Shown here piece by piece: positions 7,523 to 27,835 of a stretch of DNA of 64,000 bases. Position 1 is the first letter of the stretch, and every line of letters begins with the position of its first letter. The DNA is taken from sequence record NC_028899.1; one strand, written 5' to 3'. The translations under genes and the position numbers were made by a program. The notes under the pieces are model-generated. The model did not search any database and had not been told where the DNA came from. It worked only from the letters and a program-made list of their open reading frames with translations.

Positions 7523-8785
7523 TTACTGCTTGTTGGCCAACCGGATCTGCGTGGGTTTTTCCTTGTTGTCGACTTCGATCACGTCCCCGAACTCCAAGAA
7601 GGAAATGATCTTTTCGACCAGGTCGCCCGTGTGGCTCTGGATGAAACCGTCGTAATCGACGACGATTCGAATCGGCGAACTGACGCTGATGCCCGTGACC
7701 TTGCCGCGATGCCAGACGGTTTCTTCCTGAACGTTGACGTTAACGGGAGCCGGCATGGCATTGGCTTCGTCCACCAGCTTCGACGCAACGGCACGGGAAG
7801 ACAACAGATCGGCAATGCCCCCGGTCTTTTCTTCATCCGGGATTCCGGATTCGAGCAGATACGAGCAGAGCTCGACCTTCAGACCCGTGATCTTCTTTTG
7901 GCGATCGGGATCGGTGGCAGAGATGTTGAACATCTCGTCGCGCACGTAGGTGTCGATTGCCTGCTTGACCATGCGAACACGATCGTGGCCTTGAATCTCG
8001 GAATGCAGAGCATCGACGCGTTCCATCGGCTGTTCAGTACGGAAACGATAGTTGCCCGAAACCTTGTCCTTGTAAATGAGATCCGGGACCAGATTTCGTT
8101 CACATACGCGAACCGTTGCGCCGATACACAGTTCCTGGAACTCGACTTCCCACGGCCGATCCTGGCGACCGGATTCGTATTCCTCCTGATTCCAGGTAAC
8201 TGGGATACCCAGCGTCTTCAGCTTTTCGCAGATGATGCCGCACAGTGCTGATTTACCCACGCCAGTACGACCCTCTACGACGACACGAATGTCACCGCCA
8301 TTCAGATAGTCGCGAGGAATGTCCGTACGGCCGAGGACTGCCAGCACCCATGCCGCAGCGCCGTCCCACACGATGCGCGCGTTCTTCGTGTCGTAGTGAC
8401 CATACTCGTTCGGGTAATTCGGATGGTCCGCTTCGTAGCGCTGCACGTCCTTGATGAACGGCTGCTTACGAGCAAACGCTTCGAATGCCTTGTTATCGTC
8501 GACGACGACATCCGGCCCCATGTGAACGAGACCGTTCTGCCACTGATACGGTTCGACCTTGACGCCGTATTCCTTGCAGAGTTCGCGGGCGCGCTTGATT
8601 GCATCTGCTTCGGTCTTGCAATCCTTGCTGTGGATCGCCATGCCGTTCTCGTGACGCAGATACACGCCATAGCCGTCGGTGTCCGCATCGGCACCGTCGA
8701 ACTGTACTTCGATCGAACCGTTTTCGAGTTCTTCGAACGGCGCGATTTGAATTGCGATAACTACGCCCAGATCTTTTTCCGACAT
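7523..8785 (-). CDS. Mosaic multi-domain hypothetical protein with an isolated P-loop segment
   Basis: 420 aa. 'VVVEGRTGVGKSAL' Walker A with no evident Walker B, flanked by small modules. Confidence 0.75.
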   Translation of the reverse strand: MSEKDLGVVIAIQIAPFEELENGSIEVQFDGADADTDGYGVYLRHENGMAIHSKDCKTEADAIKRARELCKEYGVKVEPYQWQNGLVHMGPDVVVDDNKAFEAFARKQPFIKDVQRYEADHPNYPNEYGHYDTKNARIVWDGAAAWVLAVLGRTDIPRDYLNGGDIRVVVEGRTGVGKSALCGIICEKLKTLGIPVTWNQEEYESGRQDRPWEVEFQELCIGATVRVCERNLVPDLIYKDKVSGNYRFRTEQPMERVDALHSEIQGHDRVRMVKQAIDTYVRDEMFNISATDPDRQKKITGLKVELCSYLLESGIPDEEKTGGIADLLSSRAVASKLVDEANAMPAPVNVNVQEETVWHRGKVTGISVSSPIRIVVDYDGFIQSHTGDLVEKIISFLEFGDVIEVDNKEKPTQIRLANKQ

Positions 8786-8814
8786 GTTGTAACCTTTTTA
8801 AAAGAGCTATAGAT

Positions 8815-8844
8815 ATACACAGATGCCCTAGGGCATCTGTGTAT
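8815..8844. terminator. Palindromic hairpin
   Basis: ATACACAGATGCCCTAGGGCATCTGTGTAT. Confidence 0.7.
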
Positions 8845-8869
8845 TCAAACGACATGTTTAGTCGTTGGT

Positions 8870-10045
8870 TTACGCCTTAGTGCGCTTGGTCGCCGGCTTC
8901 TTCACCGGAACCTTTTTCGCAGCCGGCGTCTTCGTTGCGATCATGCCGCCGTCTTCGGTCAGCAGACGGACGCGGAAACCGAACTTCGCGGCGATCGCCT
9001 TGGCCTGGTCTTGATTCAGCTTCGTACCGGCGACAGCACGTTTGACGCCGACTTCCTTGGCCACGCGCAGCATCTTCTCCATGTCCGTCACACACATCGT
9101 GCGCGTCAGATCGACCAACTTGATCGTCACGGGGAGGTCGATAATGGCAGGCGGTTTCGCCTTGGTCAGGCGGTTCAGTGCCTCTTTCAGCGCGGGTTTG
9201 CGAACAGCCATGCCCGACAGGTCGATCGTCGACAGACTTGCGACGGGAGCGGCTGCTGCCGACGAATGAGCCGTAGCCGAACTGAGCGAAGCGTCGGGGC
9301 CCGAAGACAACGATGCGCCGCCCAAGGTGCTTGCCGTCTGATCCAGAGTACCGTTGGACTGCTTGGACGCTTGGAAGCCCGTGATGGCCGTTTTGAGGCT
9401 TTCTGCGAAGGTTCCTTGCTGTCCTTCCACCAGCGTCTTCGTGTCCTTGTAGATCACGATCACGACGACGCCACGCGGCCCCATTTCCATGTACTGGACA
9501 CGATCCACGTTTTCCGGTTCGGAGTTCGCGGTACCTTCAGTGACACGAACGAGTTCCTGGCTCTTCGAGTCGTAGCCGACCCAGACAGCTTGCTTGCCGA
9601 CCTTGTGCAGCCCGTCGGTTTGCGATGCCTTCGGATCTGGATCGCGAGTCGTGATATCGTGCTCGACGACCAGGTGGCGCTTCCAGTACGAGATCGGTTC
9701 CACGACAGGCGTGTTGCTGCCTTCTTCCGGTTCTTTCTGGACCGAACGGATGGTCGGCGGGAAGACTTCCGAAACCATCTTGCCCTTGATGAGATCGAAC
9801 ATCGCCAGGTAATGCGGCTCGTCGGGCTGACGAGCCTGACCGTGGAAGACCACCGGTTCGTTCGAGTTGAACGCGATGGCGTATTGCAGGTACGGCAGAC
9901 CTGCGCCTTCTTCACGGCCGACGGTCGTGGTGAGCTTCAGACCTTGTTGCAGGCAGGCCGATGCCATGTCGGCTTGCATCTTCAGGATCGTGGCGTGTTG
10001 TGCGACGATTTCGAGGTTCGATTGATTTTTTACGAGGCTTTTCAA
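8870..10045 (-). CDS. Hypothetical protein with a C-terminal IF2 N-domain-like module and Lys-rich tail
   Basis: 391 aa, TTG start with a GGAGA RBS. 'LPVTIKLVDLTRTMCVTDMEKMLRVAKEVGVKRAVAGTKLNQDQAKAIAAKFGFRV' resembles IF2_N. Confidence 0.65.
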   Translation of the reverse strand: MKSLVKNQSNLEIVAQHATILKMQADMASACLQQGLKLTTTVGREEGAGLPYLQYAIAFNSNEPVVFHGQARQPDEPHYLAMFDLIKGKMVSEVFPPTIRSVQKEPEEGSNTPVVEPISYWKRHLVVEHDITTRDPDPKASQTDGLHKVGKQAVWVGYDSKSQELVRVTEGTANSEPENVDRVQYMEMGPRGVVVIVIYKDTKTLVEGQQGTFAESLKTAITGFQASKQSNGTLDQTASTLGGASLSSGPDASLSSATAHSSAAAAPVASLSTIDLSGMAVRKPALKEALNRLTKAKPPAIIDLPVTIKLVDLTRTMCVTDMEKMLRVAKEVGVKRAVAGTKLNQDQAKAIAAKFGFRVRLLTEDGGMIATKTPAAKKVPVKKPATKRTKA

Positions 10046-10047
10046 AA

Positions 10048-10395
10048 TTATCTCCGTTTGGAGTTTTGGGATTGGAACGACAAGTCCGTCACATGGATAA
10101 ACTTGTCGTAGAATTCGGATTCCCGAAGGATCTCCGATTGACCATCTTCGCGAATGACGATGAAATCGTACTCGTGACAGACCTGGATATTGTCACGCGC
10201 GAATTCGAACGTGATCTCTTTCATGAAACCACGCACGTTTCGCGCTCCGACTGCTTTCTGGAGAAAGAAGAAGGGGAGCTCGTCGGGATAGCCCCTGTAC
10301 TGAAAAGCGTAGTACTTCTGTGTCGTCGTCGGCACGTGAGCGTACTTTAGCAGTTCGTCTTCTTCTTTCCGTGTGAGTCGACTTTCGCTGTCCAT
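10048..10395 (-). CDS. Small phage protein
   Basis: 115 aa from ATG 10395. 'YDFIVIREDGQSEILRESEFYDKF' matches a common phage module. Confidence 0.65.
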   Translation of the reverse strand: MDSESRLTRKEEDELLKYAHVPTTTQKYYAFQYRGYPDELPFFFLQKAVGARNVRGFMKEITFEFARDNIQVCHEYDFIVIREDGQSEILRESEFYDKFIHVTDLSFQSQNSKRR

Positions 10396-10631
10396 TATTC
10401 TCCCTTCAAAGATGGGACAGGTTGGTATTTGGCCAGATCCTTGGCGAGTATCAGGATCTGTCCGTTGAGGCCGTGCAGATAGTGCATCAGGAACACTGCG
10501 CACAAAAGCACGATTATGCCGAGAACGCTTGCGCGTCGACGGTAGAAAAGTTCGTTGCACAACATGATGATGCTGACGAGCAGCAACAGGCCCAGAGCGG
10601 TGATCGCCAAAAATGCTTGCATTTTATCCAC
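10395..10631 (-). CDS. Small membrane protein (two TM helices)
   Basis: 78 aa, GTG start with an AGGA RBS, two hydrophobic stretches. First gene after the TATATTAC promoter. Confidence 0.65.
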   Translation of the reverse strand: MDKMQAFLAITALGLLLLVSIIMLCNELFYRRRASVLGIIVLLCAVFLMHYLHGLNGQILILAKDLAKYQPVPSLKGE

Positions 10632-10698
10632 TTCCTTTCTTTCTAGTAGCCAACTTATAAAGGCGTTCAGTTACATTTTACTGTCACTATTCAGGCTA

Positions 10699-10706
10699 GT
10701 AATATA
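10699..10706 (-). promoter_or_regulatory. phiKZ-type early promoter motif TATATTAC
   Basis: Exact GTAATATA on plus, intergenic, directly downstream of a terminator on minus. Confidence 0.75.
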
Positions 10707-10730
10707 TCTCCAAAAAAGTCTAGCATAAGA

Positions 10731-10758
10731 CATACAGGAGGCCGAAGCCTCCCGCATG
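10731..10758 (-). terminator. Hairpin + TATG element
   Basis: GGAGGC-CGAA-GCCTCC core with CATAC on its left. Confidence 0.65.
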
Positions 10759-11823
10759 TCAGAACAGATCTTCAGAGAACAACGGCGTGGCGCTAATGAG
10801 GAAGCCTTTATCTTCCTTATCTCGATCTCGGATGATCCCGCCCATTTGCGTTTCCATGGGATGGAACATCTTCGATGAAGAACGCGTCAGCATTACCTGC
10901 ATTTCCGGCGTGTCGACAATCATCTTGTTCTCCACTGCCATGAGCATTGCGCGGTAACGGGTAACGAAATTGCCGTGGTTCGTCAGAAAACCCTGCACTT
11001 CCCGATCATGATGATTACCTTTGGACGCCTCTTGGTATTCCACCGAATGCAAAATGTGGTGGTGACGGTGAGGCCGTTCAACGTACCAGATCACACCATC
11101 AAGCCAATTAGCAGCCGCGATCGGATATTCGTTACCCTGATCGATCGTATCTTCTACCGCACGCACGATCGGAGTGCCGAAGTTCTTCAGCTGATTGAAG
11201 TTCGTCGATCCGAAGATCGAGTTACGCAGCTTCTGCGTGGTCGCCGCATGACTGTCGAGCGGATCGTAGTTGAGGATGGTCACTTGAAGCGACGCCTCGA
11301 CGACCAACGATGCCGCTGTGGCGGTCTTCAGCCATTTACGAGGACCCGTCACAATCGCCACCACAGGTGTCTTGGACCTCCAGAACACCGCGATGTAGAT
11401 GACGTCGTACCCGAACAAGTCGCTAGGTACAATAGCATCCCAGGGAGTGCCGTCCATGATAACGAAATCACGACCCTCCATAGTCGGATGCTCGCCCATG
11501 AACTGGTTGACGTAAGCCAGTGCCCGATGGCAAAGAGCTTCAGTCGTCTGCGGGTTCAGATCGAACATCGGTCGACTCAGCCCACCTGCACGATACACAT
11601 GCTTGCAGGCATTGACAAAACGACCGACGAGTTCGTTCACCTTGGGGCCCAGACCTGCACCGCTAATTGCCCAGTGGCCGGCTACACCTGCCGGATAACG
11701 ATGGTTAGTCTTTCTTACGATCCCGCTCAACAAGCCCGAGTTGTTGTTCGACATGAGGAGTATGCTTCCGGTTGAGTGCTTTACACCATGCGTTGTAAGC
11801 TTGCCGTGCTGCCGGGAAAGCAA
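10759..11823 (-). CDS. Hypothetical protein with a C-terminal phage 'QGFLT...LFSEDL' domain
   Basis: 'IAAA..LDG...RH...QGFLTNHGNFVTRYRAM...LFSEDLF' is a recurrent phage domain. The true start may be ATG 11754. Confidence 0.7.
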   Translation of the reverse strand: MLSRQHGKLTTHGVKHSTGSILLMSNNNSGLLSGIVRKTNHRYPAGVAGHWAISGAGLGPKVNELVGRFVNACKHVYRAGGLSRPMFDLNPQTTEALCHRALAYVNQFMGEHPTMEGRDFVIMDGTPWDAIVPSDLFGYDVIYIAVFWRSKTPVVAIVTGPRKWLKTATAASLVVEASLQVTILNYDPLDSHAATTQKLRNSIFGSTNFNQLKNFGTPIVRAVEDTIDQGNEYPIAAANWLDGVIWYVERPHRHHHILHSVEYQEASKGNHHDREVQGFLTNHGNFVTRYRAMLMAVENKMIVDTPEMQVMLTRSSSKMFHPMETQMGGIIRDRDKEDKGFLISATPLFSEDLF

Positions 11824-23367: not shown

Positions 23368-24249
23368 TTACTTAGTTTTGAAAAGTGATACAACGTTTTG
23401 GGGTTTCGGACGAACCATGAGATTCGGGATATCGTCCTTCGATGCATTCATGACTTGCAGCGCCCAGAAGAACACTTTGCCGAGTTGGTTATCGACATAA
23501 GCTTCTGGAATCGCGACACCAGTTGCCATACTGTACGCCATGGCACATTGACGATAGAACGTCTCGTCCAACATGCCGTAGAACTTTACGAGCTTCTCGG
23601 GGTCCTGCCACAGGCCGTGCATCTCAGCCTGATGGATGCTGCCGATCACGCGATCCAGTTCCAGCTTATTGAACATGTTCGACGGGTATGCGACATCACT
23701 CTTGACTTCGGTCGTAAACGCAACGCGCTTTCGTTGCAAGATAACCATCGAAACCAGGTAGTCCAATACCTGCAGACCTTCGTACGCCATACGCTGCGGG
23801 ATATGGGAACCCGTAAACATTGCATTCGCATTGAAGTACGAAATCATGCTCAACTTGACCATGACATTCTTGGTCGTCTCGTTCAGAGCTTTGACGAACT
23901 CTGGATCCTGATTCTGGACCTTCTCCATATTCAGGTTATCCAATAAGAGCTTCGTCATGTCGTGACGAGCAATGACCAACTGCTCGACTTCCAGGAGCCA
24001 GCCGGGCTGAACCTGGGTCGGATAAATCGGTGCGTCGAAGCCGAGTCTGCGATGAGCGATCGTCCCGTCGGGATCCGCTTTTACCGCTTCGAGAACAGGT
24101 GGAAGAGTCTCAAGACTTCCCAACCATTCATATACGCGAATGGCATTAGATGATGAATTGAACTTGCCATCGAAGTCCTTAATGCATCCTTCAATGCTTG
24201 GTAGAACATATTCTTGTTGTCCGAGGTTGATTGTCAAAGGGGTTTTCAT
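23368..24249 (-). CDS. Hypothetical protein
   Basis: 293-aa ORF with a TAATG overlap. Confidence 0.75.
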   Translation of the reverse strand: MKTPLTINLGQQEYVLPSIEGCIKDFDGKFNSSSNAIRVYEWLGSLETLPPVLEAVKADPDGTIAHRRLGFDAPIYPTQVQPGWLLEVEQLVIARHDMTKLLLDNLNMEKVQNQDPEFVKALNETTKNVMVKLSMISYFNANAMFTGSHIPQRMAYEGLQVLDYLVSMVILQRKRVAFTTEVKSDVAYPSNMFNKLELDRVIGSIHQAEMHGLWQDPEKLVKFYGMLDETFYRQCAMAYSMATGVAIPEAYVDNQLGKVFFWALQVMNASKDDIPNLMVRPKPQNVVSLFKTK

Positions 24250-24782
24250 TAATAACTCCGATTCGATAGGCTCTGGGCCAGTACTACGTTTTTGGGAAAG
24301 TCATTGAGGTCGTCAAAATGACTCTCTTGTACGTCCACCCGAAAGGTGAAGTTATTGATCTTCGTCAATTCCGTGACGGCGGTCAGATCACTGGTGTAAT
24401 ACGGATCGTCTTCCTTACCTCGTGCCATCTGATGCGGCATGAAGTAGTATCCTGCACCTTCCAGGCAATCGATGGCTTCTTCACCAGCATCCAGGATGAG
24501 ATTCCTCAAACGCTCTCTATCCAGATGCGAGAGATGGTAACGCCCGATTCCATATTCGTTCATGATACCGAATGACAGGTCTTCCAGATTCTGTCTGCAT
24601 GCTGCAAGGGATCTGGGAAACATGGAACAGGCAGTCATCACCTCTTCGATGAATGCATAAAAGCCCATTGCTCTGAGGAACCGATAGTACTCCGGCCATG
24701 GTTCCGTTCTGGCACGCTCCATTTCTTTATCGTACGCGACGTAGGAGCGTTTTAGCCTTATGACAAAAGTAAGTGTGCTCAT
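24249..24782 (-). CDS. Hypothetical protein (possible paralogue of 24727-25191 and 26858-27238)
   Basis: 177 aa: N-terminal beta strand, acidic helices and a terminal 'FTFRV' strand. Confidence 0.65.
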   Translation of the reverse strand: MSTLTFVIRLKRSYVAYDKEMERARTEPWPEYYRFLRAMGFYAFIEEVMTACSMFPRSLAACRQNLEDLSFGIMNEYGIGRYHLSHLDRERLRNLILDAGEEAIDCLEGAGYYFMPHQMARGKEDDPYYTSDLTAVTELTKINNFTFRVDVQESHFDDLNDFPKNVVLAQSLSNRSY

Positions 24783-25191
24783 TTCGTAATGGATGTTTCA
24801 CTACGATTGCAAAATTGGATCGAGAAACAGGAATGACTCTGACTGGTCTAGTCCCGCGCTCGCGCAGATAATCGAAGAGATGGACATCGTCAAACATCTC
24901 AACGATCGATTCGCATATTGCAAAAAGAATCCCACAGATCTTTGCGTAAGGCTCGTCCTGTGAGAAGATGTGTTCTTGTACGATTCCTTTATCGTAGAGT
25001 TTGCCGATAAAGTATTCGATTTCATTGATCTGCTGGCGTGCTTCTCGCACATTGTCAATGCCTTCAGTTAGAAACTTGACTATTTCCTCCAAGAGATTTC
25101 GGCGATCAACATCTTCAAACATCCCGGACGGGTCGTTATGGCGTATGTAGCGATCTATGTTAAAGATCACGCCAAATCTATACTTCGCCAT
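24727..25191 (-). CDS. Hypothetical protein
   Basis: 154 aa from ATG 25191 with an AGGTG RBS. Confidence 0.65.
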   Translation of the reverse strand: MAKYRFGVIFNIDRYIRHNDPSGMFEDVDRRNLLEEIVKFLTEGIDNVREARQQINEIEYFIGKLYDKGIVQEHIFSQDEPYAKICGILFAICESIVEMFDDVHLFDYLRERGTRPVRVIPVSRSNFAIVVKHPLRNEHTYFCHKAKTLLRRVR

Positions 25192-25204
25192 GATACACCT
25201 AATT

Positions 25205-25358
25205 GAAAAAGACCCCACTCCGGACCCCAATGGGTCCAGAGCGGGCGACACTATGACACGAAACGAGATCAACGGCTAAATCGGATCACCTGCCCATGCC
25301 ATTAGTCCCGAAAGAATAGCTCCGCACAGAGGAGAAAGTGCTGGAGATGGAGCTATTC
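25205..25358 (-). ncRNA. Candidate structured sRNA or attenuator leader
   Basis: Bounded by TATATTAC (25365-25372) and a hairpin plus U-tract (25206-25245). Carries a 10-bp 5' stem, GAATAGCTCC/GGAGCTATTC. Confidence 0.45.
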
Positions 25359-25364
25359 AATTAG

Positions 25365-25372
25365 GTAATATA
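25365..25372 (-). promoter_or_regulatory. phiKZ-type early promoter motif TATATTAC
   Basis: Exact intergenic match. Confidence 0.75.
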
Positions 25373-25385
25373 TCGGTGAAATGCG

Positions 25386-27238: not shown

Positions 27239-27588
27239 CGTCTTACCAAAGCAAAAAGTGAAAGGGGTGTAGCATTGTGAAATTCGTACTCTGACAACGA
27301 GTCTAAAAGTTCGAACTGTGACAATTGCCGATAAATCTGCTTAGCCAGCTTTTGCAGTTTCTGTATAATCTTGCTGGCCTTTTCAAAAGAATATCCCTGA
27401 GCATAAAGATAGCGTCGTGTGCCGTCCAAGTAGTTCCTTAAAATTTTGGACTGCTTGGTAACACCAAACGCCAGAGATACTCGCAGGTGTTCGTAATAAC
27501 TTTCCAAAAGTTTAAAGAACCGCTTTTTAAAGCGAACGTGTTTCGGATTTGGTCTTTTAAAACCAAAAATCAAAAAAGATGTTTTCAT
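27175..27588 (-). CDS. Basic hypothetical protein (first gene after an early promoter)
   Basis: About 137 aa from ATG 27588, Lys/Arg-rich, AT-rich. Confidence 0.55.
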   Translation of the reverse strand: MKTSFLIFGFKRPNPKHVRFKKRFFKLLESYYEHLRVSLAFGVTKQSKILRNYLDGTRRYLYAQGYSFEKASKIIQKLQKLAKQIYRQLSQFELLDSLSEYEFHNATPLSLFALVRRCEKPVTSSVTVTRRNVSAAC

Positions 27589-27629
27589 GCAAATGAAAGG
27601 TTCGTATGAAACGAACTTACAACAAAGTT

Positions 27630-27637
27630 GTAATATA
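27630..27637 (-). promoter_or_regulatory. phiKZ-type early promoter motif TATATTAC
   Basis: Exact match just downstream of a terminator. Confidence 0.75.
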
Positions 27638-27668
27638 TGCCTGACCAAAACTGGAATGAAATTGCGGA

Positions 27669-27703
27669 CATAAGGATACCAGGAGGCACGAAGCCTCCTG
27701 GTA
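27669..27703 (-). terminator. Hairpin + TATG element
   Basis: TACCAGGAGGC-ACGAA-GCCTCCTGGTA with CATA on its left. Confidence 0.75.
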
Positions 27704-27715
27704 CACTCACTCAGA

Positions 27716-27802
27716 CTACACGAACAGCCACGGGAAACACATCTCCCACCATGCTCGCACGGCAATGCCGTAAGCAAGGCCCATCTGTGCCGGAAGCCAC
27801 AT
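27716..27802 (-). CDS. Unannotated 28-aa hydrophobic peptide MWLPAQMGLAYGIAVRAWWEMCFPWLFV
   Basis: AAGGAG RBS 7 nt upstream of the ATG. Sits between the 417-aa gene and its terminator. Confidence 0.6.
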   Translation of the reverse strand: MWLPAQMGLAYGIAVRAWWEMCFPWLFV

Positions 27803-27835
27803 CTTAGATCTCCTTCGTTGTAGATCCAGCGACAG

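Follow-up and report, generated by a model that had tools for sequence, protein, structure and literature searches.

A probable IF2_N-family domain in ORF140, an orphan protein of the Ralstonia jumbo phage RSF1

ORF140 of Ralstonia phage RSF1 (8870..10045, minus strand; BAS04932.2, deposited as a 'hypothetical protein') lies in the window analyzed here, a stretch of 64,000 nucleotides (nt) that corresponds to positions 124001-188000 of the phage record (AP014927.1, 222,888 bp) and to which our coordinates refer unless the record is named; the assignment comes from bases 8000-11000, which are 100% identical to that record. Sequence profiles, matches in orthologs and predicted fold agree, and we are therefore highly confident that the C-terminal domain of its product is a true, although diverged, member of the IF2_N superfamily, which includes the repeats N1 and N2 of translation initiation factor IF2. 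The domain is of the N2 type, proximal to the G domain in IF2, and not of the N1 type.

RSF1 is a Chiangmaivirus, a phiKZ-related jumbo phage of bacteria encoding split multisubunit RNA polymerases. It is one of the nucleus-forming phages, and a nuclear-shell protein has been predicted for it (PMC11898562, PMC5468394). These phages part transcription from translation, and the means by which their exported mRNAs secure host ribosomes are still an open question (PMC12908238). We found no description of a phage protein with an IF2_N domain in the literature searched.

The gene is intact and encodes 391 amino acids (aa) followed by a stop codon. Its TTG start is preceded, six bases upstream, by a GGAGA Shine-Dalgarno sequence, and the stop codon of ORF141 ends two bases before it; since residues 1-22 are conserved in relatives, we take this long form to be the real one. 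The product comprises an N-terminal domain (residues 1-228; 9362..10045), a flexible linker rich in Ala and Ser (residues 229-295; 9161..9361), the IF2_N-family domain (residues 296-362; 8960..9160) and a Lys-rich, disordered C-terminal tail (residues 363-391; 8873..8959), all on the minus strand. Composition bears out an earlier note on this DNA, whose quoted C-terminal stretch the ORF contains and which had described an Ala/Ser-rich linker before the module and a Lys-rich tail after it: residues 1-225 are of mixed composition, residues 226-295 contain 20% Ala and 20% Ser, residues 296-362 carry a net charge of +7, and residues 363-391 contain 24% Lys, with a net charge of +6. In the AlphaFold2 model, the predicted local distance difference test (pLDDT) stays below 50 for residues 233-281 of the linker, and a short helix at residues 284-294 abuts the C-terminal domain. 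The note had also read the GC-rich third codon positions as a sign of high expression; the G+C content at these positions is 0.732, in the upper third of the window genes (rank 11 of 44), and is not distinctive.

Relation of the C-terminal module to IF2

Single-sequence searches with ORF140 retrieved nothing informative from NCBIfam, nor from the PDB using phmmer, and the only PHROG found was phrog_36087, of unassigned function. Profiles built from relatives were compared with 177,635 PDB sequences. With a profile of 12 close homologs (A1), the best match was Pseudomonas aeruginosa IF2, residues 260-344, in the N2 region (E 0.084). With a second one (A5), made from eight RSF1-type C-terminal domains only, the top two matches were IF2 of P. 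aeruginosa (residues 261-322, E 0.0012, 22.3 bits) and IF2 of Escherichia coli (residues 311-367, E 0.18); A5 excludes sequences already known as IF2_N and is thus non-circular, its result being marginal when taken alone. Adding to the profile two repeats from the relative P0021 brought the E values for IF2 of both species to 8e-7 and 1.2e-6, in a comparison that is partly circular. The HMMER alignment to IF2 displays the residue spacing that the earlier note had pointed out (T-I...L, G, N/D-Q..A..A..F/L-G). Identity between the module and IF2 N2 is approximately 20%, meaning that their divergence is old, and the captured origin that the earlier note proposed for the module is conjectural.

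The relatives P0020, P0021 and P0022 share the gene order around ORF140 and can thus be considered its positional orthologs. Scanning with Pfam IF2_N (PF04760; gathering cut-off 25.3 bits) gave matches above the cut-off in P0021, with three copies (81.6 bits), and in P0022, with one (25.7 bits), and a match to the same family is present on the precomputed Pfam record of P0020. Additionally, P0020 and P0021 match positions 2-66 of the 587 positions of the NCBIfam IF-2 model TIGR00487. The profile of RSF1-type C-terminal domains aligns to precisely these repeats, at residues 328-383 and 384-448 of P0021 and to residues 248-303 and 322-381 of P0020 (27.4 and 24.8 bits), and an iterated profile unites these domains with the IF2_N repeats of the orthologs.

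The predicted structure agrees with the profiles. In the full-length AlphaFold2 model, built on a 34-sequence alignment, residues 300-362 reach a pLDDT of about 96 and are arranged as strand-strand-helix-helix-strand-helix-strand, predicting a compact module of three helices plus a small beta-sheet; a model of the domain only showed pLDDT values of 81-88. Foldseek comparison with 350,542 PDB chains returned for both models the same top match, 7UIU, corresponding to the N2 sub-domain of IF2 on the 30S subunit. For the domain-only model, this match had an E value of 1.4e-4, template modeling (TM) scores of 0.66/0.68 and an rmsd (root-mean-square deviation) of 2.2 Å over 70 columns; matches 1-4 were all to IF2, and match 5 had an E value of 0.12 and an rmsd of 10.8 Å. 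No N1 structure occurred among the Foldseek matches of either model. Gp1.2 of phage T7 was retrieved in the full-length search (TMt 0.5) and was gone in the domain-only search, and ChmC, an RNA-binding chimallin-associated protein, was dropped as a candidate after no match of that name appeared in the PDB sequence searches or in the listed top Foldseek matches. Weak Pfam matches of ORF140 to AsiA (14.8 bits) and CCD48 were below threshold and had no structural support.

IF2 carries two homologous repeats, N1 and N2 (PMC9192638). The phage profile scored 32.3 bits on the N2 repeat of P. aeruginosa IF2 and -1.2 bits on its N1 repeat, and this difference, together with the alignment of the orthologs to the start of TIGR00487, assigns the module to the N2 type, sharpening the proposal of the earlier note that this gene encodes a C-terminal IF2_N-like module. 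Cryo-electron microscopy has shown that N2 anchors extended IF2 on the shoulder of the 30S subunit by shape complementarity to helix h16 of 16S rRNA, the main contacts in P. aeruginosa being Ser277, Val278, Lys279 and Arg259, and an extension of N2 occupying the minor groove (PMC9192638). Domain I (N1) of E. coli IF2-alpha directly binds the C-terminal part of NusA, as seen in pull-down and photo-cross-linking assays (PMC12297416). Homology to N2 points therefore to docking on rRNA rather than on NusA and, because N2 is the h16 anchor of IF2 (PMC9192638), a ribosome-docking module is a reasonable hypothesis; by analogy, docking of the ORF140 module on ribosomes is plausible.

The module resembles IF2 N2 (also N/G1; P. 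aeruginosa residues ~261-322, 7UIU and 7UNV; E. coli residues 311-367, 3JCJ) in fold, sequence signature and basic character, including the basic residues just N-terminal of the first strand. It differs in lying at the C-terminal side of a disordered linker with no GTPase domain behind it, in being followed by a Lys-rich tail, in its copy number and in the h16-contact loop, which in the phage proteins is unconserved and subject to insertions and deletions. N1 of IF2-alpha, as a homologous repeat of the same superfamily, illustrates that IF2_N-type domains can dock (PMC12297416), although the module resembles it less than N2 in both profile score and structure. Neither Pfam nor NCBIfam showed a GTPase or IF-2 family in ORF140, which accordingly failed the test for a G domain and for the fMet-tRNA-binding C1/C2 domains; judged by its sequence, ORF140 is not an IF2.

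The N-terminal domain and the ORF140 family

Residues 1-228 are predicted as a separately folded domain, in keeping with the claim of the earlier note that some 230 N-terminal residues were unrelated to the module. Their pLDDT is mostly above 90, and they form a long helix (residues 11-33), a beta-rich domain and a helix at residues 213-228. Foldseek produced no usable match by TM score to this fold in the PDB or BFVD; neither did its sequence match any family in Pfam or NCBIfam, and a 34-sequence profile gave 0 matches against the PDB. The residues invariant in the family are G88, P96, P97, W121, W155, G157 and N174, a set of Gly, Pro, Trp and Asn with a structural rather than a catalytic look. 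We found no sign of an enzyme or effector, and the suggestion of a translation-hijacking effector made in the earlier note found no support.

An Asp/Pro-rich loop stands out in the domain (residues 128-147; 9604-9663, minus strand). Among 12 close relatives, 15 of its 20 positions are invariant and another is nearly so; its pLDDT is 60-67, and distant members of the family do not conserve it. An interaction loop specific to this lineage is possible.

When 1.84 billion representatives were searched with a profile, 31 proteins sharing the N-terminal domain were identified, and a search of IMG/VR with the full alignment returned only RSF1 and RSL2; the ORF140 family (phrog_36087) is thus rare, and it is unannotated. 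By sequence comparison, its constant element is the N-terminal domain. Beyond the RSF1-type proteins, the module was detectable only in P0020 (two copies), P0021 (three copies), P0022, P0027 and P0028, making a range of zero to three copies across the family. The tandem arrangement of two or three copies in orthologs suggests an anchor acting through avidity. The remaining members differ in their middle or C-terminal parts, one of them containing a LysM domain and two of them ALTTAQ repeats.

The end of the protein varies among close relatives. In those of RSL2 type (C-termini of P0004-P0009, P0011, P0012 and P0018), the Lys-rich tail closes with K-P-Q-S/T-N-D or a shorter -S/T-N-D, which may be a short docking peptide. 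RSF1 and the two relatives closest to it, P0002 and P0003, stop some codons earlier than the others and lack this terminal motif; the earlier stop should not be regarded as a sign of a broken gene in RSF1.

Proposed role of ORF140 and alternatives

We tentatively favor, at somewhat less than an even chance, a role for ORF140 as an RNA anchor aimed at the 30S shoulder, made early and positioning its orphan N-terminal domain. ORF140 is a modular phage protein produced in the cytoplasm, and its basic module and Lys-rich tail would serve as an anchor to structured RNA. The target would most plausibly be the 30S subunit at or near h16, as for the homologous N2 of IF2, and the anchor would bring the N-terminal domain to initiating ribosomes or compete with the anchor of IF2 itself. 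Early production would coincide with the need of the phage to capture host ribosomes for its exported mRNAs. Favoring this role, the annotations of RSF1 and its relatives do not list ORF140 among the virion proteins, and precedents exist in two early proteins of jumbo phages that bind host ribosomes, PhiKZ014 (PMC10914614) and Churi gp335 (PMC11849849).

PhiKZ014 (PHROG 16056) is an abundant early protein of phiKZ whose N-terminal and central parts clamp the 5S rRNA of the 50S subunit (PMC10914614). It is like ORF140 in coming from a nucleus-forming jumbo phage, in size (370 versus 391 aa), in layout and in its early production, probable in the case of ORF140. They differ in target: PhiKZ014 sits on the 50S subunit, and the IF2-like module of ORF140 would point to the 30S shoulder. 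Homology between them was rejected, with hhalign probabilities against PHIKZ014 from NC_004629 of 0.2% with the whole family and 0.06% with the C-terminal domain; additionally, ORF140 did not match PHROG 16056, the PDB entry 8CD1 was absent from the top 50 Foldseek matches of the full-length model, and we found no Pfam family for PhiKZ014. ORF140 is therefore at most a functional analog of PhiKZ014. The latter represents the sole characterized family of jumbo-phage ribosome binders, of which the RSF1/RSL2 lineage has no recognizable copy, and ORF140 is a candidate for a second, 30S-directed route to host ribosomes. The module also offers an initial way into an orphan family with 31 members and into its N-terminal domain, for which no fold match was obtained.

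Several observations weigh against such a role or the homology on which it builds. Pfam IF2_N did not match ORF140, either whole or as its last 102 residues (residues 290-391), even at E ≤ 10; this is the outcome that the earlier note had named as a refutation, and for the single sequence it stands. ORF140 falls below the threshold for membership of this family and we file it as a diverged homolog on other evidence, the profiles, orthologs and fold overturning the conclusion that the single-sequence result would have implied. Residues 277-279 of IF2 correspond in the HMMER alignment to residues 318-320 of the RSF1 protein, in the loop between helix 1 and helix 2. In the columns of residues 318-320 of eight phage sequences, the share of basic residues is 0 and that of the top residue 0.25-0.62, so that the test for conservation of the h16 contacts failed; moreover, this loop contains an insertion of six columns in three of the eight lineages and is less conserved than any other part of the phage domain. 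An iterated profile did not detect the module in 20 of the 26 distant members fetched (P0014-P0042 except P0018, P0041 and P0042), nor in P0011 and P0012, and the Lys-rich tail is commoner in the family than the module, with many module-less members ending in one. Finally, the early assignment derives from one element, the promoter-like motif described below.

The poor conservation of the h16-contact residues lowers the claim of a docking geometry shared with IF2 and leaves unaffected the claim that the module binds structured RNA. Nine positions are basic in at least seven of the eight sequences (292, 297, 309, 315, 327, 335, 342, 354 and 358), and a conserved basic patch immediately precedes the first strand, with K297 basic in all eight. 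Judging by this alignment, the module has a conserved positive surface that differs from the exact interface of IF2. Because the module is patchy and the Lys-rich tail wider in distribution, the module may be one of several interchangeable anchors and, from the sequences compared, looks like one.

These same features bear on the possibility that ORF140 is a general nucleic-acid binder, in which the domain and a tail resembling that of histone H1 would hold RNA or DNA (for example, mRNA of the phage upon or after its export, or its DNA) without specificity for ribosomes, and the N-terminal domain would oligomerize or recruit partners. The unconserved contact loop, the net charges of domain and tail and the fact that no C-terminal feature is more widespread in the family than the Lys-rich tail, which also occurs where the module is missing, all suit a binder of this kind, as do weak cross-matches of the P0021 and P0022 repeats to helix-turn-helix (HTH) families. 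However, the domain-only Foldseek search retrieved no DNA-binding HTH protein with E below 1, IF2 N2 being the only clear match, and the homologous domain has a specific rRNA helix as its known partner (PMC9192638). We regard general binding as doubtful, yet as a serious competitor; if the module were a generic anchor to RNA or DNA, the outcome of this work would be a useful annotation only. A more elaborate variant of ribosome docking, in which the module tethers small subunits or initiating ribosomes to a phage platform formed by the N-terminal domain, ORF141 and ORF142 and perhaps located at the early infection vesicle or the nuclear shell, and thereby couples mRNA export with initiation or displaces the IF2 anchor, appears unlikely. 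An adaptor function between proteins, with the module binding a host protein in the way that N1 binds NusA and linking ORF140 to transcription or coupling factors, seems to us slightly more improbable still. That Domain I of IF2 contacts NusA directly (PMC12297416) and that N1 and N2 are homologous repeats (PMC9192638) speak for it, but the module resembles N2 and not N1 in the profile scores, the Foldseek matches include no N1 structure, and these phages use their own RNA polymerases inside the compartment (PMC7598289, PMC12908238), which makes NusA an unlikely target.

A place inside the virion, with the Lys-rich tail neutralizing packaged DNA, could be proposed from the tail itself, from the LysM domain and the ALTTAQ repeats found in one and two distant members, respectively, and from the major head gene lying approximately 9 kb from ORF140. 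Nevertheless, the RSF1 record gives the label 'putative virion structural protein' to other genes and only 'hypothetical' to ORF140, its homolog is missing from the structural lists of FLC6 and SURPRISE13, the promoter-like motif is of an early kind, and the LysM match is closest to the model of the LysM/BON protein of E. coli. That protein is cytoplasmic. We consider a virion-internal or DNA-condensing function quite improbable. Least credible of all is a chance resemblance, with the C-terminal domain being an unrelated small alpha/beta domain: the RSF1 copy does lack a Pfam IF2_N match and the non-circular profile reaches just E 1.2e-3, but the agreement of the profile, of the fold and of threshold-passing IF2_N matches in syntenic orthologs brings this explanation close to refutation.

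The ORF142-141-140 operon and its surroundings

ORF140 is preceded in every relative examined by a homolog of ORF141 (10048..10395, minus strand; 115 aa), which lies immediately upstream, is likely its partner and had no match in the PDB. The first gene of the operon is ORF142 (10395..10631, minus strand; 78 aa), which overlaps the start of ORF141 by one base and, from the two hydrophobic segments in its deduced product, is a predicted small membrane protein. Upstream of the operon lies ORF143 (10759-11640, minus strand). RSL2, FLC6, SURPRISE13 and RsoM3USA retain the order of genes for products of 481 aa, about 170 aa, about 330 aa (T4_Y16D-like), about 75 aa and about 110 aa, followed by the ORF140 homolog, as do metagenomic contigs as long as 232 kb. 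A Pfam scan of RSF1 ORF143 found nothing; its homologs in five loci (L002, L007, L009, L018 and L019) have weak to clear precomputed Pfam matches to T4_Y16D (PF26092). The neighbors ORF136-146 showed no Pfam family and only PHROGs of unassigned function.

A promoter-like motif, ATATATTAC, is located 68 nt upstream of the ORF142 start (10699-10707, minus strand). It was read off the window as an 8-mer, and its definition rests on its distribution in RSF1 and relatives. The 8-mer core of ATATATTAC occurs three times in the window versus 0.27 expected, and all copies of this core in the genome extend to the 9-mer. The RSF1 genome contains seven exact copies of the 9-mer (record positions 8144, 51728, 60180, 134699, 149365, 151630 and 221603), each of which is intergenic, has minus-strand orientation and lies upstream of a minus-strand gene; those in the window are at 10699-10707, 25365-25373 and 27630-27638. 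A T-rich/TTTCA element often stands just upstream, and the variants ATATATAAC and ATATATTTC, with one mismatch, precede ORF035, ORF173, ORF211 and ORF216. The motif of the operon is found at the same place in six relatives, although the intergenic DNA has otherwise diverged. In jumbo phages encoding RNA polymerases, the motif that can be found bioinformatically is an AT-rich early-promoter element of about 10 nt, used by the virion RNA polymerase (PMC7598289). ATATATTAC and its variants constitute a class of candidate phage promoters, probably early ones, and the conserved motif being AT-rich like that early element, ORF142-141-140 is probably an early operon.

Two hairpins flank the operon. 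A GC-rich one, with a 6-bp stem and a TTCG loop (10737..10752, minus strand), lies directly 3' of the ORF143 stop codon and before the motif, with similar structures in relatives. In the 84-nt gap between ORF140 and ORF139, the sequence contains a perfect 11-bp hairpin (8817..8842, minus strand), likely the point at which the ORF142-141-140 transcript ends or is processed.

The minus strand carries nearly all genes between 3400 and 48000 of the window, and ARAGORN found no tRNA or tmRNA genes in the whole window. ORF163 is annotated with 112 aa (24249-24587, minus strand), and a longer ORF of 177 aa starts at an ATG at 24782. The product of this longer ORF (24249-24782) aligns with phrog_28923 from end to end (1-177 of 177, E 1e-115), and the deposited start of ORF163 thus looks too far downstream. 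Two of the promoter-like motifs are followed, directly downstream, by unannotated stretches of approximately 600 bases, 24783-25385 and 27239-27835 (minus strand). These stretches contain ORFs of 181 and 200 aa with TTG starts and no PHROG match, and could represent unannotated genes, long leaders or non-coding RNAs.

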